From the NCBI GenBank assembly GCA_977017575.1, contig CDRNVI010000045.1:1-64000 (forward strand): a DNA stretch of 64,000 bases, given 5' to 3'. The translations under genes and the position numbers were made by a program. This document shows positions 31,058 through 64,000 of this stretch, piece by piece (position 1 is the first letter of the stretch; each line of letters begins with the position of its first letter). This DNA comes from Paramoeba atlantica. Lineage: Eukaryota; Protista; Discosea. The notes beneath the pieces were generated by a model. It saw only the letters and a list, made by a program, of their open reading frames with translations. It had not been told where the DNA came from and made no database searches.

Positions 31058-31935
31058 TTTGGTCGGGCAGTATTACCCAAAACGCTGAATTCCTCAAATG
31101 CTTTTGCGTAAATTTTGTTTTAGTTTATGCACGAAATTTATTTTAATCAATGATTACTCTTAATCTAAATAATATGTCCTAGATAGTGTCTTTACCAAAG
31201 TGAGATGTGAAATAAAGGACAAACCCTTTTACCATTTGCGATTACACCCCTGTTAATATATTTCTGTAAACGAGACATTTTGTAAATGGGACAAAAACTA
31301 GGTAAAACGGTTTCCAATTGGTAGTCTATGGTCACCATACGACAAAGCAAGAATTGTGACTAAAGCGAAACAAATGTAACTGTCTAGTAATTTTCTAGTC
31401 CTACAGCAAATTCAATGAGCTCCAGACAGAAAACGTTGAATACTAGAATAGTATTAAGAATATTTAGAATAGGTGTAACTGATCGTCTAAGCAAGTGTGT
31501 ACGTGATTCAGCAAATGCAAGCTTTAAATAAATACAATTAAACAATAATATAGTATAGACAAGTTTACCATTGTAGACAAGAGTAAGCAAGTAACTCAGC
31601 TTGAAATTCATATCTACACCTACTGTTTGAATAGGTGACTCCACACTATCGCCTTATTAGTTGATGTTCTCACTTAGATACGAGACGTTTCCCAATATAC
31701 TCCCCCATAGGTAAGCGTGGAACACTTTGTTCGATCCATCGTCTGGGAAGCTTTTGTTTGGGATAGATTACAGCCTCGAATAGATTGTCCAGCAAATCCA
31801 GTTGCAAATTCCGCGCATCCCTTCCCATATCATGTAAGTTTAAGTAACCAGAAAACCGATTTCTGCTGAAGTTCAAAATCTCTAACGAGTCAGGAAGATG
31901 CTTCACATCTAGCTCTCCAAAAAACAAATTCTCGC

Positions 31936-32542
31936 ATGGTCATGATCATACGCTCGTGGCGCAGAGATACGTCTCTCTGTGTGACGGCCGATACCATCGG
32001 CGCATGACCCGCATACGACGGGTGTCACACAGAGAGTGGAGTGCGAGGTAGGAGACGAGACGCCCATCGGTCATGCTACAGCACGTATAGCCATGGTTCA
32101 TGCTGCAACACGGTCAAGCCGTGGGTTCATGCTGTCAGATGGTCTATCGTGGATCATGATGCATCATGGGGAGGTCCGTTACCGCCGCACTCGCTACAGC
32201 ATGTAGGGAGAGAGGGGTGCAAGTTCGCATCCCCTATACACGCATACAACGTGTCCTCCCGCTGTAGCACGCCCAGTGGTCCTCAAGGGAGGCCACCATG
32301 GCGCATAGCTCCCGGGAGAAGAAAGCACGAGAAGGAGAGAGCCGGGGAGGGAAGAAAGCTCACTCGAAGAGAGCGATCCGGGGAGGGGTGAAGAGTGCGA
32401 AGTGCGTCCCCTACTTCCGCGACAAAGAGGGACAGTTCCAGCTAGCCGTCAGCCGGAAACGGGCATTTAAAAGTAAGAATATGCCCGTTTCCGGGAAAAG
32501 AAAGGAAGGGCTCAACAAGGTATAGAAACTGTATCTTTATTT
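31936..32542 (-). mobile_element. Non-autonomous SL-capped retroelement C (607 bp)
   Basis: Starts AAATAAAGATACAGTTTCTATACCTTGTTG; no ORF; LRR frame resumes at 31935; the empty site (38261-38280) implies a 3-nt deletion; homologous to D and E. Confidence 0.85.
32513..32542 (-). other. Spliced-leader exon 3' fragment (30 nt)
   Basis: AAATAAAGATACAGTTTCTATACCTTGTTG; compare the kinetoplastid SL end CAGTTTCTGTAC+7 nt ending TTG. Confidence 0.75.
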
Positions 32543-33274
32543 GATTGAGACTTATAAGATCAGGAAGTTTTGTCAAGTCTACAGAACCAGTTAACATATT
32601 CGACTGCAGCGATAACTGCCTGATACGAGCCGGAAGGTTTTCTAAAGTTATGGTGCCGTTAAAGTTGTTGTTATCCAGACGCAGAAAAGAAATATTCCGA
32701 GGCGATGCGTCAAGGGCTAAAGTCCCCGAGAGTAAGTTGCCGCTCACACTCAATTGCTTCAAATAGGGAGAAATCAATGACAAATCTAATTCACCTTCAA
32801 AAACGTTACTGTCCAGACCTAGATGCGTAAGTGAACGTGCCAAACTATCCAAAAGTATATTGCCTTTGAAAAAGTTTCTATGGAGACTCAAATACTTTAG
32901 ACTTTGAGGTAAATTACCAAATTGTAGGTTCCCACTGAGTGAGTTACATGATGGAACGCTGCAGGAGTTCCATTTTTACTGGTAGTGTTGATAAATCCAG
33001 TGGCCCAGTATGTGCATGAAGAAAGAGCGATGAGCATTCCAACGAGGCGGCAAATGAAGTTTTGGAATAGTCCCATGCAAGTTCCTCTTCCGTCCTGAAG
33101 GAACATCAGCTGAAAAATAAGAGAGTTGAATGGGCTTGGCATGCCAAGTAAGATTTCCTTTCATGATAATATCATTAAAGAAAAGAAAAAATATCCGCAT
33201 GCGTTCATCACAATTAACTCCTTCCCATTGAGCATGCAAAAAGAGCATGAATAGGGGGAGTGTGTACGATGTTC

Positions 33275-33475
33275 TTACTCAGATACGAAATGTTTGTCTA
33301 GATATTCACGCATGGATAAGCGCGGAACACTTTGTTCGATCCATCGTTTTGGAAGCTTATGTTTGTGATAGATTACAGCCTTGAATAGATTGTCCCGCAA
33401 ATCAAGTTTCAAATTCCGCGTATCCTTTCCTATATCATATAAGTCTAAGTAACCAGAAAACTGATTTCTGCTCAA
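33275..33475 (-). pseudogene. LRR gene copy X, 3' piece
   Basis: LSRNQFSGYLDLYDIGKDTRNL...KHFVSE*, near-identical to the end of 51359-52531. Confidence 0.9.
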
Positions 33476-33565
33476 TTTAATTTATCATACCTTTATAAGG
33501 CAGAGAATATGCGGATAGGCCTGGGGGGCGCATATGACGCTGCCCAGACCTATCTTTTACAGACG

Positions 33566-35962
33566 TTATACCCGTCCTTCTGTCCAAACGGCAGACTCGC
33601 GGTTCTGCCAGATAATGAAACTGCCTCGAAGGGCGGTCTGCATTAGACTTTCTCGACATTTTTCCGCAAGCTTTGTGTCCTCGTCAAAGAGGAGGTTGAG
33701 GTTTCGACAAGATGTGAGTAACGAGCCGCGGGCTCCCACTTCGAATACAACAAGGGTCGTCCTAGGGTGATTAATGCGTCGTTCATGGAAGAGAGCATTA
33801 TATTTACGGGATTTGCCCTCGTGCGCCTGAGACTGGTTCTCTTCCCAGGGCACAGTGAGCTCAATGATGAACTCACTTCCATCCTTAAGTGTAATCAAAC
33901 CGTCGGGGCGAAGAAGGTCCTCACGGGTGCCGAGCCATGCCGGGGCATTCCTAAATCCGGGGATATCTAGGTGTACGCTCTTGGTATACGGCGAACGCAG
34001 CAAGTGTTTTCCGAGCTCTTCAAGTAACATGTCATGACGGAGGGTGTATCTCCCTTGCTGAAGGGACTCTTTGCACCCCGAGAGCACGTGCCTTGTTGTT
34101 TGAGGTTCGAGTTTACATATGGGACATGTTACACTCGCACGCCGCAGACCCCAAAGCCGAAGATTGGTTCTGGATGGTAGGGGTGAAAGCGTTAGTACTG
34201 AAGCTGCGAAGCGATAAAGTTTTTCACTGTTGAGGTTGTTCAGGGCCGCTGAGAACTCTTTCGCGAGATCAGCCTCGGAGGGGAGGCTCCACCATTTTGC
34301 TGCTGTCGGTGCCCGTCTCTGAAGCTGATTTATGACGTAAGATTCATGGTTATCACGGGCTATCTGTTGCGCCTTCCGCGCGTCATGAAGGTGTTGAATG
34401 GCGTCAGCGCTTGGACGAATATAACCAGAGGATCGTTTTTCTTCTTCTTGCTTGATTCGGGCTCGTAGTGCCGCCTGTATCGATGGGTCCCGCGACTTGT
34501 GCATCTGTGTTAAGGCTAGGATAGAGCATTCGGACCACAGCTTGGATAAACTTTTAAGGTTCCACCCTCGTTCAGTATAAAGAATTTCGGTGCAAGTCGT
34601 GGATGCTGCATTGATCCATTTCTTAAGGTGACGTGTAATTCTTTTCTGCAATCGCAATACAAAGTTGAAAGTGACACACGGGTGAACGGTGAGGGCGTAG
34701 CGCAGACGGGATACGATCGCTCTGTTGTAGATCCAAAGTTTTTCGGGGAGACTGTGTGCACTCTCGTCGACATTCCGAAGCCATGTTCTTAGTCTGACAT
34801 CCAGCTTTTTGAAAAGTTCTTTCGCTTGCTGTGCTCCTGGTGCTATGGTCATTCCAAGAAAAGTGCTTCCACGGTCACATATATGTGGTATCGCTTTGCC
34901 TTCGATACTGAGTCTCGGCTTCCTGGTCATGTAACCCGGGTGCTCACTGCCTTCACGCATGGACATGCACTGTGTACGGCTCTTGTCTACGTTGATTGAG
35001 AGTCCTATTCGTCTCAGTGCAGTTTCGAGTGTGTTGGTCGCGTGCTGCATGTCGGTATCGCTGCTAGTCAGTATCGTCAGGTCGTCAACGTAGGCTTTCA
35101 GGAAATGCCTTGGAGTATCTGGGTAGTCAAGGCCATACCGGGGGCACGATTGCTTGAGGTATCGTAGTACAGTTTCCATCACTAAGTTGAAAATTATGGG
35201 CGACAGGGTATCACCTTGTAGTACGCCTCTGTGTATCGGTATAGCACGTGACAAACCTTCGACACACTTAATACGCATTTCCGCATGTGAATACATGCTT
35301 TCAACGTAGGACACGATTTGTGGCGAGACGTTTGCCCATCGCAGTGCCTCGAAGATGATGTTATGGGGGACCGAGCCGAATGCATTGCTGAGATCAAACT
35401 GCGTGAGACAATATTGCCTTTTGTTTCGGCGGTAATATTGTAGTATTTCGGATAGAGCTTGCGTGTGTTCCAGTGTACCACTCATCTTCGGAAGAAAGCC
35501 TTTTTGAACGCTTGTATCTAGGAGGCCGGAGGACACGGTATGCGTCAAAATTTGGTGTCCGATCATGCTATTGAAAAGTTTGCCTAGAGCGCTAGTCAGG
35601 GAGATAGGTCTCCAGTTTTTCGGGATGTGTTTTTCGCCTCCTTTGTGAATGAGTTTAACTACGGCGGAGGACCAGCATGGCGGGCAGACGCCGTAGCGCA
35701 GAAGATCATTAAACGTGTTCGCTATACGGGGGTACAGGTATTTGCATTGTTTTAGAAGTGCGTTTGTAATCGTATCACGCCCTGGCGCGCTTGCGCTTCT
35801 TTTGCTGCTGAGCGCGTCTGCGACATCTTGCGCGGTCAGTGGAGACCATTCCATTTCGTTGATGGGTAGAGGACCAAGTACGTTGTTCGGCGGCAGACGA
35901 ACGCTTCGGCGGGAGGTGCTGTGCTTTCTGTGAAATATTTTTCTATCGTAGGTAAATCGCAT
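33566..35962 (-). CDS. Element A RT, CCHC knuckle and REL endonuclease (C-terminal part of a frameshifted single ORF)
   Basis: KNWRPISL, QKGF, QFDLSNAFGSV, GVLQGDTLSP, AYVDDL, CPICKLEPQTTRHVLSGC..QGRYTLRH, RPDG...IIELTVPWEEN...K..KY, FEVGARG. Confidence 0.9.
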   Translation of the reverse strand: MRFTYDRKIFHRKHSTSRRSVRLPPNNVLGPLPINEMEWSPLTAQDVADALSSKRSASAPGRDTITNALLKQCKYLYPRIANTFNDLLRYGVCPPCWSSAVVKLIHKGGEKHIPKNWRPISLTSALGKLFNSMIGHQILTHTVSSGLLDTSVQKGFLPKMSGTLEHTQALSEILQYYRRNKRQYCLTQFDLSNAFGSVPHNIIFEALRWANVSPQIVSYVESMYSHAEMRIKCVEGLSRAIPIHRGVLQGDTLSPIIFNLVMETVLRYLKQSCPRYGLDYPDTPRHFLKAYVDDLTILTSSDTDMQHATNTLETALRRIGLSINVDKSRTQCMSMREGSEHPGYMTRKPRLSIEGKAIPHICDRGSTFLGMTIAPGAQQAKELFKKLDVRLRTWLRNVDESAHSLPEKLWIYNRAIVSRLRYALTVHPCVTFNFVLRLQKRITRHLKKWINAASTTCTEILYTERGWNLKSLSKLWSECSILALTQMHKSRDPSIQAALRARIKQEEEKRSSGYIRPSADAIQHLHDARKAQQIARDNHESYVINQLQRRAPTAAKWWSLPSEADLAKEFSAALNNLNSEKLYRFAASVLTLSPLPSRTNLRLWGLRRASVTCPICKLEPQTTRHVLSGCKESLQQGRYTLRHDMLLEELGKHLLRSPYTKSVHLDIPGFRNAPAWLGTREDLLRPDGLITLKDGSEFIIELTVPWEENQSQAHEGKSRKYNALFHERRINHPRTTLVVFEVGARGSLLTSCRNLNLLFDEDTKLAEKCRESLMQTALRGSFIIWQNRESAVWTEGRV

Positions 35963-38151
35963 TCAGGATATTCGGCGGTGGCGGAGGTCGAGGGGCGGTC
36001 CAAGGCCTCGGATGCTGCTGTCCACGGGTTCCGCGTGAATCTGCTATGGGCCCATTGTCTTTCTAGCTGTTTCCTATGTGCTTTGGCCTCTTCTGTGTAT
36101 GTTTTCTCTAGCTTCTCACTTTCCTTAATGCAGCGACGGAGCTCTTGGCGTTCCGTTCCGTGTGTGTAGCGTAGTGATTTCTTTTGGTTGCGTATGTGTT
36201 TCGTCATTTCGTGGGCTGCATTTTCAGACGAAAGTGGCCGGTGCTTGAATCGGGCGTGTCCGCGTTTCGATCGCGTGAGGAAACCTTTAGTGGGGTTAAT
36301 CTCTTGTGCAATTTCGTATGCCGCCACTGCCAGAGAGGCACCCAGGAGTTCTGCGTTTTTCACTGCGATTTCCGGGGTGTCTACTGTTGGATATTGCAGC
36401 CTTCGGCATGTATCGTATGCCTTGTTTTCAACCGCCTTCCATTGATCGTCGTTAAGCTTTAGGCACATTTTTCCCCCTGTTATGGTTTTGTGTTGTTCAA
36501 GCAGATGGAGGCGTTCCCTTTCGCTGGTTTCATCCCATGATGGAACTCGAAGTTCCGTAGTGTGCGAAGGAGGAGGAAGAGGAGAAGGTCGGACGAGGGG
36601 CTCATTGTACCTAAGCGGTCCATATATCTTACAGCATTTATGCAGACAGCGTAGCTTGGCCGAGCATCGGTGACGACATGGTTCCACGTGTATGGTGTTC
36701 TGTGGGTAATGCGCTGCACTGCTAGGCGTCGCGTCAGGGAGTGGCGCAGGGTTGTGCATAGTGCTATCTTTGTTGTCAGTGCACGTCGCATCCGTGATTT
36801 GCACAGTATGTTGGTTCCCGTTTGTTGGTCCGTTGATGCTAGTATTGGGAAGGCGGTAGAAGTTTATAACGTTACGCATGGCCCAACCAGCCAATTTAGC
36901 AGCTTTCCGTAGGAAATCACTATCGTTGTCGTTGAGGTTTGGTGTTACGGAGTTCTGGTTGACGTCGGCCCCCTCTGTTTGGGTTCCCTCGGCAGGTGGG
37001 ACCATTTGGACATCAGGTGGAGGTTGTGTTGCCGGGTTTAACCCTCGTTCTAAAGTTGTGTGAGCGCCCTCCCGTGATATTGCGTTGCATAGCTTCGTTT
37101 GTAGATTTTCATTTGTAGAAGTCGCGGAAGTTGGAAAGTCCAGATGCGAAGATTTAATGCCTCGTTTACAACATAGATGTCCGCACGTAGCTTTGTTCTT
37201 GCAGGAATGACGACATGGATGCGGGGCGGAAGGTTCATCATGTACGGTAGGTTTGCGGTGACCGTTCGACGCATGTGTGTTGCATTTTGTATGTGTCGCA
37301 GGTTCCGAAGAGGTGCTTTCCGGCGTATATTTACTTGGATCTCCTGGGTTGGTGTTATTTGCAGTTCCTTCTGGGACGATCTCAGTTGGCAGTGCTCCTT
37401 CTGATGAGCAATATGTAGCGTCCTCACTCGGCAGCGGTCCATAGATTTTACAGCACTTGTGAGCACAGGAGAGTTTGCTCAAGCAGCGGTGCTTGCATGG
37501 TCCCTTGTGTTGATCAGTTTTACCCTTCTGGGGCTTTGGCGTTCGTGGGGGAGCGATTTTATGAGGGGATTCTTCTATCCTGCGCGGCTTCTCGTATTCC
37601 GCGGTTTCAGTGCTTGGTGTTTCCTGGTTTCTTATGAGCTCGATTTTTATGTGCTTCAGTCCCGATATTTCTCTTCCCTGTATGGCCTTCAGGGCTGCCT
37701 TATTTAGCGTGCTTGGGGTGGAATACTTGTCTCGCAGGCTGAGGGCAGGGTCGGTGTGCATCGAGACCCAGTTTGGGTGCAGGGAGATGGTGTAGGGGTG
37801 TTCATTCCTCGTAACCTTTATATAGTCGCACGCGTTATGCTCCACGAGCTCCTCAAAGGTGGTGTGTTCAGCTACGAGATCGTGTGCTGATGCACACTTA
37901 CTCAGCAGTTTCGTGATAGCTACTTCCGCACCTTGTCGGGATGGAATTCTTTGTCTGACTATGGACCATTGGCTCGCGGTCTTAATGTCCGGGAAATACG
38001 TCCAATGCAGATCAGTGAGGCGTCGTATCTTAACGGGCCGTGATCTGCTGTGGACGAAGTGCAGGGTTTGCGTCCGTACGCCGCCGGAAGCTCGAGGGAG
38101 GTCCGGCAGCGCATCGTCAACATTCCGCGGAGAAGTGGGATTGTCGGACAT
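35836..38151 (-). CDS. Element A N-terminal part (true start MSDNPT at 38151) with 3 CxHxCxxKxxCxHxCCK fingers
   Basis: ATG 30 nt after the SL end; ends in RNPWTAAS...YP.C, which is contiguous with the RT in element B, so one frameshift lies near 35900-35930. Confidence 0.8.
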   Translation of the reverse strand: MSDNPTSPRNVDDALPDLPRASGGVRTQTLHFVHSRSRPVKIRRLTDLHWTYFPDIKTASQWSIVRQRIPSRQGAEVAITKLLSKCASAHDLVAEHTTFEELVEHNACDYIKVTRNEHPYTISLHPNWVSMHTDPALSLRDKYSTPSTLNKAALKAIQGREISGLKHIKIELIRNQETPSTETAEYEKPRRIEESPHKIAPPRTPKPQKGKTDQHKGPCKHRCLSKLSCAHKCCKIYGPLPSEDATYCSSEGALPTEIVPEGTANNTNPGDPSKYTPESTSSEPATHTKCNTHASNGHRKPTVHDEPSAPHPCRHSCKNKATCGHLCCKRGIKSSHLDFPTSATSTNENLQTKLCNAISREGAHTTLERGLNPATQPPPDVQMVPPAEGTQTEGADVNQNSVTPNLNDNDSDFLRKAAKLAGWAMRNVINFYRLPNTSINGPTNGNQHTVQITDATCTDNKDSTMHNPAPLPDATPSSAAHYPQNTIHVEPCRHRCSAKLRCLHKCCKIYGPLRYNEPLVRPSPLPPPSHTTELRVPSWDETSERERLHLLEQHKTITGGKMCLKLNDDQWKAVENKAYDTCRRLQYPTVDTPEIAVKNAELLGASLAVAAYEIAQEINPTKGFLTRSKRGHARFKHRPLSSENAAHEMTKHIRNQKKSLRYTHGTERQELRRCIKESEKLEKTYTEEAKAHRKQLERQWAHSRFTRNPWTAASEALDRPSTSATAEYPECDLPTIEKYFTESTAPPAEAFVCRRTTYLVLYPSTKWNGLH

Positions 38152-38180
38152 GTTGGAGATACAGTTTAGAAAAAAAAAAA

Positions 38181-38203
38181 CAACAAGGTACAGAAACTGT
38201 ATC
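38181..38203 (-). other. Spliced-leader exon 3' fragment at the 5' end of A
   Basis: GATACAGTTTCTGTACCTTGTTG, preceded by AA shared with the LRR flank. Confidence 0.75.
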
Positions 38204-38405
38204 TTCAGAACCTCCAACGAGTCAGGAAGATGCTTCACATCTAGCTCTCCAAAAAACAAATTCTCGCTGAGATTGAGACTTATAAGATCAGGAAGTTTTG
38301 TCAAGTCTACAGAACCAGTTAACATATTCGACTGCAGCGATAACTCCTTTATACTAGCAGGTAGGATTTCTAAAGTTATGGTGCCGTTAAAATCGTTGGT
38401 ATCCA
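38204..38405 (-). pseudogene. LRR gene copy X, middle piece between elements B and A
   Basis: DTNDFNGTITLEILPASIKELSLQSN...HLPDSLEVL, matching the intact paralog. Confidence 0.9.
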
Positions 38406-38491
38406 TTATTTATATCTATACAGGGCATTACCTGTAGAGTAATAAAGTCTAACAGGACGTACGCATATGACGTCGCCTGCTAGACCATTTG

Positions 38492-41400
38492 CTAACCAAA
38501 GCTTTGGTTGTCCCATAAAGGGGATTCCCTTTTCAGCCAGAGTTGAAAGCTGCTCCGGATCGCCGTTCGGATGACTTCGACACGGCACTTATCTGAGAGT
38601 GCCTTGTCACCCAAAAAGAGACGGTTGATGTGACGCAGCGTCGTAGAAGGGAGACCTCTAGCTCCAACTTCAAAGCATATCAAGTGGCAGTCTGAGTATC
38701 TTATTTTTCGTCGGTGTAGAATATTTATGTACTTTTCTACTTTTCGGCAGTGGGCTTCGTGTACGTTTTCCTCCCAGGGCATCGTCAACTCAACGATAAA
38801 TTCAGTTCCGTCGTTGAGTTTGACGATTCCATCTGGGCGAAGCTGTGTTTCCAGGTCGGACCACCATGCGGGTAGTTGACGTAGGTGTGGGAGATCAAAA
38901 TGTGCCTCTGCGGTATGGGGGGAAGAGAGTATCGCGTTTGCAAAGGTGGAGAGTACACAATCATGGCGATATGTGTAACGTCCCTGTTCTAGTGATACCT
39001 TGCACGAGGATAAGAGGTGTCGTAATGTTTCCGGTTCTTGTTTACAAATTCGGCATTGTACTGTATCTGTGCCGTGAATTCCCCATGTCCTCAGCATTGT
39101 CCTAGTAGGGAGAGTGTTTTGTACCATTAAAGAAGTTGCGAAGCGGCTAAGGGAAGTGCTACGTAATCCGTTTATCGCGGCGCTGAAATCTTTCGCCTGT
39201 TCTTCCTCGGAGGCTATATCCCACCACTGAATAGCGAACGTTGACCTGCGGCGTAGTGCGTTGATCATTCGGTCCTCATTAAGCTCAAGAAGAGTTCGTT
39301 TTGCGAGGTCGCGATCCTCCAGTATGTGTGTGATGTCACATGCTGGTCGAATTTGGCCTTTCCTGCGCTTATGTTCTTCAGCCCGTATTCTTTCCTGCAG
39401 TGCGGCGGTAACGTTCGGGTCTCGGGACCGCTTCATTTGACAGAGAAGATCAGCTGTACAGTCTTCCCAGAGTCTGGACAAGCTGCAGATGTTCCATCCA
39501 CGCTGAGAGTAGATTGCTTCGCTGCATGTAGTTCTAGCCGCATTGATCCACCGTTTCAGGGAGTGAGTACACATTTTCTGAAGGCGTAAAATAAAGTTTA
39601 GCGTGATACATGGGTGTATAGTAAAGGTGAAGCGTAGCCGAGAGATGATTGCGTGCTGATATATCCAAATTTTTGATGGGAGGTCGTGGGCCGACTGGTC
39701 AATGTTATGAAGCCATCGCTTCAATAAGGGCCTAACTTTCGTGAAAAGGGCTCGGGATTGTTGAGAACCGGGGGCAATATTCATGCCAAGAAACGTACTT
39801 CCTTCGTCGCATATATGCGGTATAGCTTCGTTCTTGATGAAAATTTGAGGACGTCGTGTCATGTAGCCGGGGTGTTCATCATTTTTCTTGGACGCCATAT
39901 ATTGGACTCTGCACTTTTTGACGTTGATCGAAAGGCCAAGCGAACCGAGTACCGTGGATAGTGTTTCAACAGCCAGTTGCATTTCTTTTTCACTATTCGT
40001 CAGGACCGTGAGATCGTCTGCGTACGCTTTTAGGAAGCTTTTTGGAAATCCAGGGAGGTTCAATCCAAATGAGGGAAATGATTTTGCCATGTAACGTAGG
40101 GCTAGCTCCATAATCACCAGAAAGAGCGTAGGAGAGAGAGTGTCACCTTGTAAGACACCTCGTTTAGCTGGGATCGCGCTGGACAGACCTTCGTAACATT
40201 TAATGCGGGTACTTGCGTCAGTGTATAAGCATTGGACGTATTTAATAATGTTTGGGGAGATTCTCGCCCATTCCAGTGCTTCAAAGATGATGTTGCGGGG
40301 GACTGAACCAAAGGCGTTACTGAGGTCTAGCTGGGCCATGCAGTAGTTCCACTTGTTCTTCCGGTAGTGGCGTAGGAGCTCTGAGAGGGATTGCGTATGT
40401 TCGAGAGTACCGTTAATGGCGGGGAGAAAGCCTTTCTGTATCTTGGGGTCAATGACAGAGGCTTCAAGTAGGAATTTCGTCATTTTCCGGCTGATGATGG
40501 AATGCAGGAGTTTCCCTAGTACGCTAGTCAGGCCGATGGGACGCCAGTTTTGTGGGTTGTCAGGCTCCCCTTTTTTGTAAATGAGGCGAGTGACGGATAT
40601 TTTCCACGACGTCGGACATGTGCTGAAGCGCACTAGCGCGTTGAAGACGTTTGCCATGTGGGTGTGGGAGCTGTGGCATCGCTTTAGAGTCTGGTACGTA
40701 ATGGAGTCCTGGCCTGGAGCACTGCTGTTTTTCTTTGATGTGAGAGCGTTCGAAATGTCGATTGAAGCCAGTTCGTCCCAGGTCATTTCTGCCAGAGGAC
40801 GGTTTCCGAGGACGTCGTGGGGTGGTAAGTGATGCACTGTAGTGGGGTCCGTAAGTAATGTTGTGAACACACTTTCCACTTTCTGTACATTGCAAGTCGG
40901 ATAGGCCGGTACACTTTCTGCTTCTGTCCTTTTGTCCAAGGTTTGACTCGCAGCCGTCCATGGATTGCGGTTGAATTGTTGAAGTGCCCAGCGACTTTCC
41001 AGTTCCCGTTTTTGGGCCATGGCTTCTGCGCTGTATATACGTTCCGCCTTTTTGGTTTCCTTAATCTTTTGTTTCAACGCCATGCGGGGAGCCTTGCCGT
41101 GTGTGTATCGCAGCTTCATTTGTAGTTGTTTTACATGTCGAGAGAAGGAAAAGGCAACTTTTTCGCTTTCTAATGGACGGACTTTCCCCTTTATGTGTCC
41201 TCGAGCCGTTCGGATAATGAAACCCTTCCTGGAGTCGACGTCTCGCGCCACTTCATATGCCGACACCGCTAGTATTGCACTCAGTAGTTCTGCGTTATGG
41301 ACGGCGGAGAGTGCGTCGCCAGAGACAGTGAGCAAGGTGTTGCATCTGTGGAGGGCCCTACGTTCCACCTCGTGCCAGTGCGCATCAGCCAAGTTTATGT

Positions 41401-41944
41401 TTAACTTGCCCCCCTGGATGTATCGTGCCGTGCGGAAAAGGTACTCCGTCTCGTCGAGTGGTCTCGGAGAGGAAGCGGAAGTGGGGGGGTTAAGTTCGGG
41501 GTGTTCTTGCTCTTGTCCTGCGTTGGGGCTCCCCTCAGAGTCTCCTTCGATTCTCTGATCGAGGGATGGTCCATAAATTTTGCAGCATGGATGGCTGCAT
41601 TTGAGTTTACTTATGCATCGATGTTGGCATGGGTGCGTCCGCTTCAAGGAGGGGGCGTGGTCACGCGAAATAATCTCGTATGGTGGAAGTGTTGGGACCG
41701 TTTGGGGCTTTGATGGCTGTACTTCTTCTTTGTCGTCGGTGCGAAGGAGCAGAACGATCCGAAACGCCGATAACCCAGGGACCGCTCTCCCGTTCAGTAC
41801 CTTATTTACCGCTTTACCCATTGAGCTAGGTGATGCATAGTGGTTGTATAATTCCAGGCGGCTGTCGTGAAAAAGAGATACCCAGTTCGCGTGGCGAGAA
41901 ATGTGACTTGTTGAGTCTACTCTACTAACTTCTAAAAAAGTCAC
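38492..41944 (-). CDS. Element B RT, knuckle and REL with one finger (C-terminal part of a frameshifted single ORF)
   Basis: QNWRPIGL, QLDLSNAFGSV, GVLQGDTLSP, AYADDL, CRICKQEPETLRHLLSSC..QGRYTYRH, RPDG...IVELTMPWEEN. Confidence 0.9.
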   Translation of the reverse strand: MTFLEVSRVDSTSHISRHANWVSLFHDSRLELYNHYASPSSMGKAVNKVLNGRAVPGLSAFRIVLLLRTDDKEEVQPSKPQTVPTLPPYEIISRDHAPSLKRTHPCQHRCISKLKCSHPCCKIYGPSLDQRIEGDSEGSPNAGQEQEHPELNPPTSASSPRPLDETEYLFRTARYIQGGKLNINLADAHWHEVERRALHRCNTLLTVSGDALSAVHNAELLSAILAVSAYEVARDVDSRKGFIIRTARGHIKGKVRPLESEKVAFSFSRHVKQLQMKLRYTHGKAPRMALKQKIKETKKAERIYSAEAMAQKRELESRWALQQFNRNPWTAASQTLDKRTEAESVPAYPTCNVQKVESVFTTLLTDPTTVHHLPPHDVLGNRPLAEMTWDELASIDISNALTSKKNSSAPGQDSITYQTLKRCHSSHTHMANVFNALVRFSTCPTSWKISVTRLIYKKGEPDNPQNWRPIGLTSVLGKLLHSIISRKMTKFLLEASVIDPKIQKGFLPAINGTLEHTQSLSELLRHYRKNKWNYCMAQLDLSNAFGSVPRNIIFEALEWARISPNIIKYVQCLYTDASTRIKCYEGLSSAIPAKRGVLQGDTLSPTLFLVIMELALRYMAKSFPSFGLNLPGFPKSFLKAYADDLTVLTNSEKEMQLAVETLSTVLGSLGLSINVKKCRVQYMASKKNDEHPGYMTRRPQIFIKNEAIPHICDEGSTFLGMNIAPGSQQSRALFTKVRPLLKRWLHNIDQSAHDLPSKIWIYQHAIISRLRFTFTIHPCITLNFILRLQKMCTHSLKRWINAARTTCSEAIYSQRGWNICSLSRLWEDCTADLLCQMKRSRDPNVTAALQERIRAEEHKRRKGQIRPACDITHILEDRDLAKRTLLELNEDRMINALRRRSTFAIQWWDIASEEEQAKDFSAAINGLRSTSLSRFATSLMVQNTLPTRTMLRTWGIHGTDTVQCRICKQEPETLRHLLSSCKVSLEQGRYTYRHDCVLSTFANAILSSPHTAEAHFDLPHLRQLPAWWSDLETQLRPDGIVKLNDGTEFIVELTMPWEENVHEAHCRKVEKYINILHRRKIRYSDCHLICFEVGARGLPSTTLRHINRLFLGDKALSDKCRVEVIRTAIRSSFQLWLKRESPLWDNQSFG

Positions 41945-43943
41945 ACGCTCTCTTTTCCATAAGTTCGTCTACGGTACACGTTTCTACGACGATGTCGTGT
42001 GCTGCACTTTTCCCATTGAGCGCTTTGGACAGGGCGGCTTCAGCCCCCTGGGGGGAAGGGATACGACTACGCACAAGTTGGCTTACGCATGCTGCATGCA
42101 CATCCGGGAAATATCTCCATTTGTTGTCGTTGACGAGGCGGAGTTTGACAGGTTTTGACCGGGACTGGATAAAGTGGAAACGTTGCTTGTGTCGGTTATG
42201 GGTTACGGGATGCGTGGGGTCCTGGGGCGGCGGGAGATACTGTGACGGGCTGTCGGGAGTTTGTGTGGGAATCTGGGGACCCTCGGATTCATCCGAATGT
42301 AAATGGGTGTCCAGTTGTGATGGGGGTAAGAGGCTTCCTTGTTCAAGCGGCGGGCTTTGTATTCGCCCTACGCTGTGCGCTTGTTGGAAAACCCAGGATG
42401 GGACTTCGTCATCGCCATTCTCATTCCGCGGACTGTGTTGGTGTGCTGGGGAAGATGAGTCCAAGAGAATGATACTTTCCCGTGCCTTGTTTTTGGGAGT
42501 CCGGATGGCTGGTTCCCTGGCAATGGCACGGTCAGCTGTCGTAGTGGTTGTGTTTAGGGACGGTGTGACGAGATTCTTGGGAAGGGTACATGGGCCGGTG
42601 GGTAGAGTATCCTGCCCATCCAGTTTGCTTATCGGTGTGTCAAGCGAAGTCAACGGTGTGCCAGTGCGTTTGCAGCAAGGATGGCCGCACCCTGCTTTGT
42701 TCTTACATTTATGCTTACAGGGCTCGACACGGTCTGCTTGTTCGGAGGCGGGGCCTAGGCCTTGCTTGCAGCACACGTGCTTACATTGATCTTTACTCTT
42801 GCAGATATGCTTGCATACTCTAGTTAAGGCGTGGACCTGAAGTTGTGTTGGAGATTTAGGTTTGGGGAGGCTTTGGGAGTCCGGAGTTTGACATGGAACG
42901 CCGTTGAAAAGTAGGAATTTGGCAAGCGAGCAGGCAGTTGATGCGACGGCACGACCGACGGTAACAGTGGGTGATTTTTGATGGGGAGTAACCTCCTTGG
43001 GTGGGGGTACATGTAAATCGTGTTCGTCTTTTGGACAGGGTGCTATTGTGTACGACAAGCGTTCCTGTCCGGTGCTGCTGTGAGGTCGTACGGTTACCGC
43101 CGGGGTTGAGGGAGTGCCGTTAGCGTACGGTTGAGTGCGGCTTGAAAACAGATATCGTGTTGCAGCTCGCGCTGCCATGCCAAGTAGGTTGCTTGATTTC
43201 GGTACTTTCACATCCTGTGTTACGTGGTCACGGGTGCATGGCGGTGACGTTTCGTCCCTTTGTCGCGTACTTGGAGCTTCTTTGGGCCCGGATTCTTGGC
43301 CGCTCGCCGTAGTGCTCGTGAGTTCGTATGTTGTTGGTGTAAGATTACGTTTGCAACATGGGTGCCCGCAGGTCTGTTTGTTTTTACAGACATGCTTACA
43401 GGGTGTGCTACGTTGTACCGGCATTACACTCACAGCCGTGATCACCTTTACGTCTTCTCTTGCATCCACCGGTGCGTCACTTCTCTTATTGTTGTACGTA
43501 TCCGGTTTTGCTACGCGTACCAGGTGTCGTTTGCAGCATGGGTGTTCACAGTGAGCTTTGTCCTTGCAGCGGTGTTTGCATTCCGGAACCGTTTGTTGTG
43601 TGGTGGGGGGGACGGGGTGAGGGGGAAGTTCGTTTGTGTGAGGAGTGACCAGGATATGTGGCCGCGTTACACCCCGCTTGCAACAGGGGTGTCCGCAGGT
43701 GCTTTTGTCCTTACAAGGATGTTTGCATGGAGCTGGGGGTGCTTCTCCTGTGTCGCTGGTAAGGGACTCATTGCTCTTTTGGGATATGAGAGCCTGGACG
43801 GTTCGGGTAGCAGATTTTGCAACCCTGTCTGTGGGAGTGCCTTTCAGGGACAGGTTTTTGTTTTGGTTAGACACGTCGCGTGGTCTCTTAGGAGAGTCCT
43901 GCGACGCCTGGTGTGTGCCCTTCACTAGTAGTAAGCAAAACAT
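41925..43943 (-). CDS. Element B N-terminal part with 5 CxHxCxxKxxCxHxCCK fingers
   Basis: Ends ...EKRACDFFRS*; the homologous domain continues without a break in A (ACDYIKVTR), so there is one extra T in the T6 run near 41935. Confidence 0.8.
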   Translation of the reverse strand: MFCLLLVKGTHQASQDSPKRPRDVSNQNKNLSLKGTPTDRVAKSATRTVQALISQKSNESLTSDTGEAPPAPCKHPCKDKSTCGHPCCKRGVTRPHILVTPHTNELPPHPVPPTTQQTVPECKHRCKDKAHCEHPCCKRHLVRVAKPDTYNNKRSDAPVDAREDVKVITAVSVMPVQRSTPCKHVCKNKQTCGHPCCKRNLTPTTYELTSTTASGQESGPKEAPSTRQRDETSPPCTRDHVTQDVKVPKSSNLLGMAARAATRYLFSSRTQPYANGTPSTPAVTVRPHSSTGQERLSYTIAPCPKDEHDLHVPPPKEVTPHQKSPTVTVGRAVASTACSLAKFLLFNGVPCQTPDSQSLPKPKSPTQLQVHALTRVCKHICKSKDQCKHVCCKQGLGPASEQADRVEPCKHKCKNKAGCGHPCCKRTGTPLTSLDTPISKLDGQDTLPTGPCTLPKNLVTPSLNTTTTTADRAIAREPAIRTPKNKARESIILLDSSSPAHQHSPRNENGDDEVPSWVFQQAHSVGRIQSPPLEQGSLLPPSQLDTHLHSDESEGPQIPTQTPDSPSQYLPPPQDPTHPVTHNRHKQRFHFIQSRSKPVKLRLVNDNKWRYFPDVHAACVSQLVRSRIPSPQGAEAALSKALNGKSAAHDIVVETCTVDELMEKRACDFFRS

Positions 43944-43981
43944 GTCGTTGTAAAGGGTAGGGAAAAGAAAAAGTCAACAAG

Positions 43982-43999
43982 CAACAAGGTACAGAAACT
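43982..43999 (-). other. Spliced-leader exon 3' fragment at the 5' end of B
   Basis: AGTTTCTGTACCTTGTTG followed by a second CTTGTTG. Confidence 0.7.
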
Positions 44000-44033
44000 C
44001 AATATTTGGAGGTAATGTGTCAAGGGAATATTT

Positions 44034-44774
44034 GCAGAAGCTCAATATTTGGAGGTAATGTGTCAAGGGCCAAACTTCCCGAGAGTAAGTTGTTGCGCAT
44101 ATTAAGGCGATGCAAATAAGGTGAAATCAATGATAAACTTAAGTCACCTTCAAAGAAGTTACAGCCCAAATCTAGATCGGTAAGTGAACGTGGCAAACTA
44201 TCCAAAAGTATGTTGCCTTTGAAAGAGTTTCCATGGAGATTCAATTTCTCTAGACTTTGAGGTAAATTACCAAATTGCAAATTCCCACTGAGTGAGTTAC
44301 ATGATAGCTGTAGCAGTTCCATTTTTTCAGGTAGTGTTGATAAATCAAGCGGCCCAGTATGTGCATGACGAGACATAGCTAAAAATTCCAACGAGGCGGC
44401 AAACAAAGCTGTTGGAATAGTCCCATGCAAGTTCCTCTTCCGTCCTAAAGGAACGTTAGCTGCAAAATAAGAGAGTCGAACGGGCATGACATGCCAAGTA
44501 AGGTTTCCTTTTAGGACAATGTCGTCAAAGAGAAGAGAAAAAATACGCATGCGTTCATCACAATTACCTCCTTTCCATTGACACACGTGGAGGAATTACG
44601 CCAATAAGCGGGTCGATAGGTAATATGGGCTACGAAACGCCTCATGCGAGTATCATCATCTTCCGTAAGTGCACTTACTTTGCTGCCAAACTTTCTTCTT
44701 TTTAGCGGGGGCTCGCATGCGAGAAAGAAAAATGCGTCAGCATGGAAGTCAATCACGAAAACAAGAGCGACGCC
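44034..44774 (-). pseudogene. LRR gene copy X, 5' piece (start codon lost, frameshifted)
   Basis: IDFHADAFFFLACEPPLKRRKF..., CQWKGGNCDERMRIF...LPPNIELL, near-identical to 51359-52531; homology stops at cgacgcc (44774). Confidence 0.9.
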
Positions 44775-63721: not shown

Positions 63722-64000
63722 AGATGCAGTTTCTGTACCTTGGTACAGACTTGCTAGCCCTTCTTTTCTTATGCTAGAAACAGGCATACATTTTCTCTTT
63801 CATGCCCGTTTCCCGTTCACGGCTAGCGGGAACTGTCCCTCTTTGTCGTGGAAGTAGGGGACGTATTTTTGACTCTTCATCCGTCCCCAGCTCACTCCTT
63901 GAGTGAGTTTTCTTCCCTTCCCGACCCTCTGTGTCTCGCGCTTTCCGGGGAGCCATGCACCATGATGGCCTCCCCGGAAGAACACTGGGCGTCGTTTTGT
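63722..64000 (+). mobile_element. Non-autonomous SL-capped retroelement D (C family); runs off the window
   Basis: AGATGCAGTTTCTGTACCTTG followed by continuous homology to C (agcccttc, atgcccgtttcc, gaactgtccctctttgtcg.ggaagtaggggacg, gagtgag, atggcctccc, cactgggcgt). Confidence 0.8.

Follow-up and report, generated by a model that had tools for sequence, protein, structure and literature searches.

The question raised by this locus is how retroelements come to begin with the tail of their host's spliced leader (SL). The stretch analysed, here called the window, is positions 1 to 64,000 of contig CDRNVI010000045.1 (Paramoeba atlantica, assembly GCA_977017575.1), and it contains three elements, A, B and C, inserted in tandem leucine-rich repeat (LRR) genes. 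On the minus strand, the 18-mer AGTTTCT(G/A)TACCTTGTTG is found at the head of each of them, at positions 32513-32530 in C, 38181-38198 in A and 43982-43999 in B, while shuffled versions of the window contain a mean of 0.02 matches. A fourth, degenerate match is present on the plus strand at 63728-63745. The SL-like start shared by A, B and C in the sense direction had been noticed in an original prediction made from the letters of the window, and the coordinates given there were right to within 2 nt, with the 5′ end of B at 43999. As all open reading frames (ORFs) of at least 250 aa in the window are on the minus strand, A, B and C lie in sense within one transcription unit. We conclude that the three elements were probably copied from ordinary trans-spliced RNAs together with the SL, through a cycle of the type used by A and B. 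The features of the region are as follows.

31670-31935, minus strand: LRR gene 2, piece downstream of C
31936-32542, minus strand: element C, a 607-bp non-coding SL-headed retroposon resembling a short interspersed element (SINE), in LRR gene 2
32513-32540, minus strand: SL relic at the head of C, 28 nt (SL nt 11-38) with one G>A change relative to the SL gene
32543-32975, minus strand: LRR gene 2, piece upstream of C (Pfam FNIP/LRR)
33275-33475, minus strand: LRR gene 1, 3′ piece after A, to the stop codon
33476-38203, minus strand: element A, a 4.7-kb R2-type non-long terminal repeat (non-LTR) retrotransposon with a reverse transcriptase (RT) and a restriction-like endonuclease (RLE), and one frameshift near 35900
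33566-35962, minus strand: downstream ORF piece of A, with RT (Pfam RVT_1), CCHC zinc knuckle and RPD...ELTVP nuclease core
35836-38151, minus strand: upstream ORF piece of A, the N-terminal region with repeated C-x-H-x-C-x6-C-x-H-x-CC motifs
38181-38203, minus strand: SL relic at the head of A, 23 nt, then a T-run; the start codon is at 38151
38204-38405, minus strand: LRR gene 1, middle piece between B and A
38406-43999, minus strand: element B, a 5.6-kb relative of A with two ORFs in the window copy
43975-43999, minus strand: head of B, an 18-nt SL relic (43982-43999) and then a second, 7-nt relic, CTTGTTG (43975-43981)
44000-44030, minus strand: filler at the 5′ junction of B, read directly, including a 28-nt duplicate of the upstream LRR target and ending ..TTGAG
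44032-44586, minus strand: LRR gene 1, 5′ piece upstream of B (Pfam FNIP/LRR); the ORF is restored without B and A

The genome searched comprises 45.7 Mb in 248 contigs. When the 18-mer was extended with a splice-donor GT and the loci were read, the SL RNA genes were found to read AACTTTAACGATAAAGATACAGTTTCTGTACCTTGTTG followed by GTATGAG, in tandem units that also hold a 5S rRNA gene (99 bits), which is the arrangement described for bodonid SL arrays. The array exon, AACTTTAACGATAAAGATACAGTTTCTGTACCTTGTTG, is 38 nt long, ends in TG rather than AG and is followed by the intron GTATGAGAAGC. Of the 38 places with the exon-intron junction, most are in arrays on contigs C3, C11, C24, C74, C97 and C107, and none abuts an A, B or C element; by construction, a search with the junction string yields only 5S-linked arrays or dispersed SL RNA retrocopies, to which all 38 places belong. 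At their heads, A, B and C match the terminal 23, 18 and 28 nt of the SL exon, respectively (with one G>A change in C), each head ending exactly at the final exon base. C has ..ATAAAGATACAGTTTCTATACCTTGTTG, A has GATACAGTTTCTGTACCTTGTTG and then a T-run, and B has AGTTTCTGTACCTTGTTG and then the second CTTGTTG. The genomic motif heading A, B and C is the true 3′ end of the host's SL, and the possibility, raised alongside the original prediction, that the organism's real SL differs from this motif did not hold once the array had been located. Genome-wide, the 18-mer is found at 978 places with no more than one mismatch.

We favour trans-splicing as the source of these heads because they end exactly at the 3′ end of the SL exon in every family and because the copies that were read lie outside the SL arrays (0/7 for A, 0/12 for B and 0/~28 for SINE copies are in an array). 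The same conclusion is favoured by the finding of unrelated elements with the same head, by a form of the C family that is joined after an internal AG, by stacked relics that start after the SL's own CAG or AAAG, and by further SL-headed RLE families, together with a relative in another organism that bears that organism's own SL. Copying of a trans-spliced RNA with its leader was the first of two readings offered by the original prediction, and the array-free copies, the unrelated SL-headed elements and the post-AG junctions all speak for it.

The unrelated retroelements that share the head include many poly(A) retrocopies and a long interspersed element (LINE) with an apurinic/apyrimidinic endonuclease (APE). 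The latter was found as 4.7 kb insertions in the SL array on contig C74, where it lies in the spacer, 337 nt past the exon. It encodes Exo_endo_phos and RT domains, has a 12-bp target-site duplication (TSD; ATATGCATGAAC) and is headed by CTTGTTG, the last 7 nt of the SL. Two SL-5S units in this array (L053/L054; G000:C74:104000-123752) have been lengthened by this LINE from 2.7 to 7.3 kb, and a C-family SINE is nested in each of the two copies.

In the C family, the exact 3′ tail of C is common to approximately 48 copies and related SL+GTAC heads are present in >140 genome copies. Two junction forms were found. Most copies have SL+GTACATTTTGCTAG+CCCTTCC, and some have SL+CCCTTCC, which is joined exactly after the AG of the former. 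This is as expected if a copy with SL+GTACATTTTGCTAG had been transcribed and then trans-spliced at the internal AG. The window copy is SL+AGCCCTTCC, two bases off, and a canonical acceptor does not explain it. A SINE of the C superfamily is also present on the opposite strand at the edge of the window (63725-64000, plus strand), where it runs off the window end; its head, CAGTTTCTGTACCTTG-GTACAGACTTGCTAGCCC, lacks three leader bases and has an altered linker.

The SL also marks other retrocopies. RLE-type families retain 10-32 nt of it (A 22-32 nt, B 10-24 nt and SINE copies with a mode of 28 nt in an unselected sample), and SL nt 1-6 are missing from every genomic copy of A, B and C. Other retrocopies, often with a poly(A) run in front, retain 34-38 nt. 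Poly(A) runs that abut a complete or near-complete SL (AAAAA directly followed by AACTTTAACG..) were seen at L005, L006, L015-L017, L021, L025, L089, L092, L094 and L101 (G000 C1, C2 and others), and resemble head-to-tail retrocopies, perhaps arising from end-to-end template jumps by RT. Two abutting leader tails were found at 104 places genome-wide. The second relic is a 16-nt one starting after the SL's internal CAG at 14 of the 104 places, in at least 10 families, and a 22-nt one starting after AAAG at two more; among the AG-type stacks are those of a SINE relative and of an RLE LINE with 55% identity to A (L093, L104). The most frequent second relic, TACCTTGTTG (10 nt), is present at approximately 45 of the 104 places, and no AG precedes that point in the SL. 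Such stacks probably mark a few large families descended from a copy whose relic was 10 nt long. In the window, a second relic is present in B only, where it is 7 nt long and does not start at an AG.

Other pieces derived from the SL gene or its RNA were encountered. Four unspliced SL RNA retrocopies (G000:C83:132963-133065, C6:27023-27125, C87:74326-74426 and C87:106884-106984) span exon nt 3-5 to approximately intron nt 67 and lack the promoter, and an intron-only piece at C25:199013-199081 starts exactly at intron nt 1. In a 5,093-bp tandem array (L001-L004; G000:C1:8252-26547) a 37-nt leader lies between two copies of one segment of the 5′ untranslated region (..TTTGTATTTCGCACGAATAAAAGT..), which suggests incorporation of a cDNA with its leader into an array of host genes. 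A candidate remnant of the SL promoter in front of the SL at L009 was dropped, as the similarity is weak and covers 21 nt.

Other RLE families of the host are also SL-headed (L104, L105). The most distant leader-headed relative is an RT-RLE element of another organism, found in a metagenome contig with a GC content of 60% (L106:1-6048) and 29% identical. Its head consists of 34 nt of a leader unlike that of the host (..CAGTTTCTGTACTTTATTG; starting ACGCTATAAAAGATACAGTTTCTGTACTTTATTG), which again ends at the exon boundary, and the ACGCTATAAAAGATACAGTTTCTGTACTTTATTG leader is that organism's own SL, a different euglenozoan leader. This element also has an extra upstream ORF of 259 aa and a short terminal A-run, and lies within a satellite-like repeat (..CTGCTTATCGTTTCC..). 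No leader was found in the other metagenomic relatives (L107-L114), several of which are probably without their 5′ ends.

Judged by their predicted proteins, A and B are related R2-type retrotransposons with an RT and an RLE. Both match Pfam RVT_1 (A, E=1e-32; B, E=2e-28), with the catalytic motifs YVDD / YADD. With phmmer they align to the R2 structures 9nl3, 9dou and 9nl2 from the RT through the nuclease, including the CCHC knuckle (CPICK..H..C) and the RPD..ELT(V/M)P..K nuclease core. The motifs QGRY..RH, RPDG and ELTVPWE reported earlier are present. In Pfam searches, neither an APE domain (Exo_endo_phos) nor a protease domain was found in the A and B proteins. The two are 49% identical over the RT and nuclease part. 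Their N-terminal halves contain the motif C-x-H-x-C-x6-C-x-H-x-CC, repeated three times in A and six times in B, with the consensus PC(K/R)HxCxxKxxCxHxCCK. These Cys/His repeats have no Pfam match (zinc-finger or Myb) and are a candidate DNA-binding module for target choice.

Six full-length matches to A, counting the window copy, are 98-99% identical; one further copy matches only the first 3.5 kb and several others are 5′-truncated. There are about ten to twelve full-length copies of B, at 99% identity. A and B had been described as autonomous. The window copies have one frameshift each and are thereby split into two ORFs apiece, but intact single ORFs are present at other loci, of 1528 aa for A (L043:559-5142) and 1816 aa for B (L056:458-5905). 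At the break in A (35900-35901), other copies and contigs from sequencing runs have one extra base. Across the 45.7 Mb, at least 1,851 RT candidates were counted, many with long open frames, and the host genome is unusually rich in seemingly young retroelements.

No poly(A) and no TSD were found at the A, B and C copies read, as had been predicted. A ends in ..GTATGATAAATTAAA and B in ..GTATAGATATAA plus 3-5 variable nt, with no A-run, and the last few bases differ between copies after a conserved ..GTATGAT.. (A and C) or ..GTATAGATATAA (B). The two tandem LRR genes, compared with each other, served as the empty-site reference, and the host LRR ORFs close up once the elements are removed. Target deletions of 1, 3 and 3 nt had been proposed for A, B and C, respectively. 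The 1 nt lost at A was recovered, with a paralogous contig joining 38204 to 33475 with one extra base and the host ORF restored by one filler base when A is removed. Relative to the neighbouring paralog 3 nt are indeed missing at C, where the ORF is open with 0 or 3 filler bases. At B the loss is bounded at 0-3 nt, and with B and the 31 nt of junction filler removed the ORF needs one filler base. This filler of approximately 31 nt and its 28-nt duplication were absent from the original prediction; another A copy (L048) has a similar junction duplication of 24 nt.

The three insertions in the window are at the same phase of three LRR units (IELLQ^xDTNDFNG, LEVL^xLSRNQFSG and LISLN^xxENLFFG). 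Genome-wide, the motif N-x-F/L-x-G lies 5-10 nt (in one case 19 nt) past the nominal 3′ junction in 17 of 41 independent insertions (A 4/8, B 4/13 and C 9/20), all 17 in the sense frame of the element. The background, N-x-F/L-x-G anywhere in a random 60-nt window, is 0.9%. Several further sites are degenerate LRR units (e.g. L044). A, B and C have a strong preference for one phase of the LRR, not a strict specificity. An SL-headed RLE family 45% identical to A was found where a long (GT)n tract ends (L105:2700-3010 and L024; G000:C2:374598), and comparison with the LRR-sited families suggests that members of the group differ in target preference.

C may have been moved in trans by an enzyme of the A/B type, for which the shared target phase and junction style are the only evidence. 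The features common to C and A/B are limited to this phase, a truncated SL head, the lack of poly(A) and, close to the end, a short GTATGAT. The earlier view of C as a SINE partner of A and B holds to that extent. Beyond the SL head, alignments and word searches revealed no similarity between C and A or B, in body or tail, above shuffled controls. C is non-coding and multi-copy as a SINE should be; however, it does not share the 3′ tail of a partner LINE, and its head is the SL tail rather than a tRNA, 5S or 7SL head with a Pol III promoter. C has no Rfam match at E≤1 and no match to a tRNA.

The cycle that we propose would run as follows. A and B lie in sense inside polycistronic units, and each encodes one long protein with N-terminal Cys/His repeats, RT, CCHC knuckle and endonuclease. 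The 38-nt SL would be trans-spliced onto an AG acceptor before the 5′ untranslated region of source copies, as for kinetoplastid mRNAs. The endonuclease would then nick DNA in the sense orientation, preferring, as the insertion statistics indicate, positions 5-10 nt upstream of the Asn codon in LxxLxLxxNxFxG. Reverse transcription would begin at the element's own 3′ end, so that poly(A) is not copied, and would enter the leader and stop 6-28 nt short of the cap, in keeping with the relics observed. Finally, microhomology, filler or short duplications would serve to join the 5′ end, at the cost of 0-3 nt of target and without a TSD, as shown at the window copies. Each new copy would thus carry a leader tail as a birthmark. 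C would be a non-coding RNA that enters the same cycle, with the A/B-type enzyme supplied in trans.

Several observations weigh against this account. The search of sequencing runs yielded no RNA run containing the window stretch, and among contigs of four runs, a possible RNA set (X5) had SL-bearing contigs but matched the 35-nt leader region only and not the body of A. TG and a T-rich stretch come after the SL in all copies of A and B, with no AG before the start codon. The SL itself ends in TG, so that re-splicing of a daughter copy at its existing junction is impossible, and among all high-identity matches there is no full-length A or B source copy that lacks the SL and is preceded by an AG. 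The T-rich linker between SL and body varies among copies that are otherwise 99% identical (for example TTTTCTTTT, ATTTTTTTTT, ACTTTTTTTTTCTTTT, CTTGTTGAC.. and ACCTTGTTGTCTC..). The variants recur in a second assembly of the same loci and are therefore not assembly noise, and simple inheritance from one master does not explain them. Slippage on a U-run in reverse transcription, short-lived sources in which an untidy 5′ junction created an AG, or template jumps are possible explanations. C shares no tail with A or B. Finally, one locus (G000:C41:280658-280877) consists of 182 nt from upstream of the SL gene and the complete 38-nt exon, at 98% identity, and its match leaves the SL gene exactly at the exon end, so that something other than the intron comes next; the sequence was read as far as 280877. 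Either a source copy fused to the promoter or recombination with a retrocopy could account for this locus.

The C41 locus is what would be expected if source copies stood behind the promoter and exon of an SL gene and carried the exon to new sites by co-transcription, with no trans-splicing. SLACS is said to use the SL promoter, and the missing AG-preceded source copy of A or B is in line with such an origin. Nevertheless, we consider it unlikely. B alone has at least seven different SL-body junctions, and many unrelated families are SL-headed, whereas C41 is a single locus; no A, B or C match lies near it in the scored match lists. The post-AG junction in the C family and the relics after CAG and AAAG need a splice acceptor, not a promoter, and the insertion that does occur in an SL array is the APE-type LINE, in the spacer and not at the exon. 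The second reading in the original prediction, that the elements normally reside in SL RNA genes, thus finds little in its favour, as no copy read is in an SL array and C41, read as far as the exon end, is one SL-gene-like locus.

R2-type enzymes jump between templates, and the leader might have been added to a leaderless element RNA if RT jumped at the RNA's 5′ end onto an RNA bearing the SL. End-to-end jumps are indeed suggested by the variability of the T-rich or filler bases that separate SL from body and by the many poly(A) runs abutting a full SL. However, the landing point of a jump is the acceptor RNA's 3′ terminus and the last base of the SL exon is not the end of any stable RNA, the unspliced SL RNA retrocopies form a separate class that includes the intron, and neither the post-AG form of the C family nor the post-AG relics would be expected from jumps, which makes this origin very unlikely. 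That the head is an element-internal terminal sequence merely resembling the SL might be argued from the heads being only partial (10-32 nt), but comparison with the SL gene refuted this, leaving it scarcely any credibility. The heads show identity to the exon in the 5S-linked SL RNA genes, its final base included, and extend to varying points of the SL at their 5′ side; the same head is found on unrelated elements, and the relative in another organism bears the SL of that organism. Copying from trans-spliced RNAs remains the reading that we prefer.

A wider interpretation, offered tentatively, is that an R2-type lineage in more than one euglenozoan may have given up promoters and residence in SL genes for host trans-splicing, and that several families and a hitch-hiking non-coding element specialised on one LRR phase. 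Each copy would then be marked with a leader tail. If so, no earlier LINE would share such a site preference for a coding motif in a large family of surface-protein genes, in an element lineage that repeatedly breaks, and possibly reshuffles, LRR surface-protein genes. The preference for an LRR phase bears on the turnover of these genes in free-living kinetoplastids, and the candidate recognition module in the Cys/His repeats is a new one for study. The approximately 940 dispersed leader tails are a built-in tag for retroposition events, a type of record so far exploited only in dinoflagellates. Leader length by enzyme type (10-32 nt for RLE against 34-38 nt for poly(A)/TSD copies) could serve as a read-out of how far RT reaches toward the modified cap.

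In the full-text literature, we found nothing on leader-headed retroelements in kinetoplastids, on autonomous RLE elements with a 5′ end derived from trans-splicing or on LINEs aimed at LRR-coding DNA, and searching with the SL string itself likewise gave nothing relevant. In genome papers on Bodo saltans, 'SLACS/CZAR' elements are listed, with no description of leader-headed copies (PMC4728078). Leader relics and re-spliced stacks are already established in dinoflagellates, where, as in perkinsids, SL-relic retrogenes were re-spliced at an AG inside the relic to give stacked truncated leaders (PMC6050394, PMC5585692). The retrocopies described here likewise have a leader encoded at their 5′ end in the genome, and stacked relics cut at an internal AG were found among them. 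They differ in that the host is a kinetoplastid and that the tagged sequences are autonomous RLE and APE elements and a SINE-like family, not only host retrogenes. Furthermore, the SL of this host lacks a terminal AG, so re-splicing at the same junction is impossible.

Trypanosomatid retroposons are described as obtaining a capped, translatable RNA from an internal promoter (ingi/L1Tc) or from residence in SL genes (CRE), and ordinary trans-splicing, in which the DNA copy takes the leader along, would be a third way. Ingi and L1Tc, whose transcripts from the Pr77 internal promoter are unspliced (PMC1874656, PMC8190864), are likewise kinetoplastid non-LTR elements that need a translatable RNA. 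Ingi and L1Tc use an APE nuclease and poly(A); A and B, by contrast, apparently depend on ordinary trans-splicing. Members of the CRE clade (SLACS, CZAR, CRE1 and CRE2) share with A and B a kinetoplastid host, RT and RLE, a single ORF and an association with the SL, but have a fixed position inside SL RNA genes, poly(A) and a TSD (PMC12278014). No fixed SL gene site was found for A and B (0/19 full-length copies are in an SL array), neither has poly(A) or a TSD, and the 3′ part of the SL is their own 5′ end. The original prediction that they are not CRE-like stands, and it is by these features, not by RT phylogeny, that they are set apart.

In a maximum-likelihood tree built from database proteins only, with no named CRE, NeSL, HERO or R4 references, A, B and four sister families of the host form one clade (100/99). 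This clade and two database proteins are nearer, with weak support (83/72), to proteins with a C48/UCH protease and to the clade of the L106 element than to R2-like proteins of ants. A protein atlas matched generic RT clusters only. Protease domains are typical of NeSL-like elements. A and B resemble the NeSL/Utopia/HERO group in lying nearer, with the weak support noted and among unnamed relatives, to proteins that join RT with a C48/UCH protease, and differ from it in having no protease domain. The HERO/NeSL-type label given to them earlier is plausible.

A and B also have the features of the R2 supergroup, namely an RT domain, a CCHC knuckle and PD-(D/E)xK-type nuclease without APE, and strand-specific insertion without a TSD, although their site preference is not strict. 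Like R2 itself, they have a single ORF with RT, CCHC knuckle and C-terminal PD-(D/E)xK-type nuclease, no poly(A), small target deletions, untidy 5′ junctions and a strand-specific choice of target. The 5′ end of R2 is produced by co-transcription with rRNA and ribozyme cleavage, whereas that of A and B would be produced by SL trans-splicing in the reading favoured here. They differ from R2 further in their N-terminus, with its repeated C-x-H-x-C...C-x-H-x-CC motifs, and in their target, which is a protein-coding LRR motif chosen by preference only (about 40%), compared with one rDNA site for R2.

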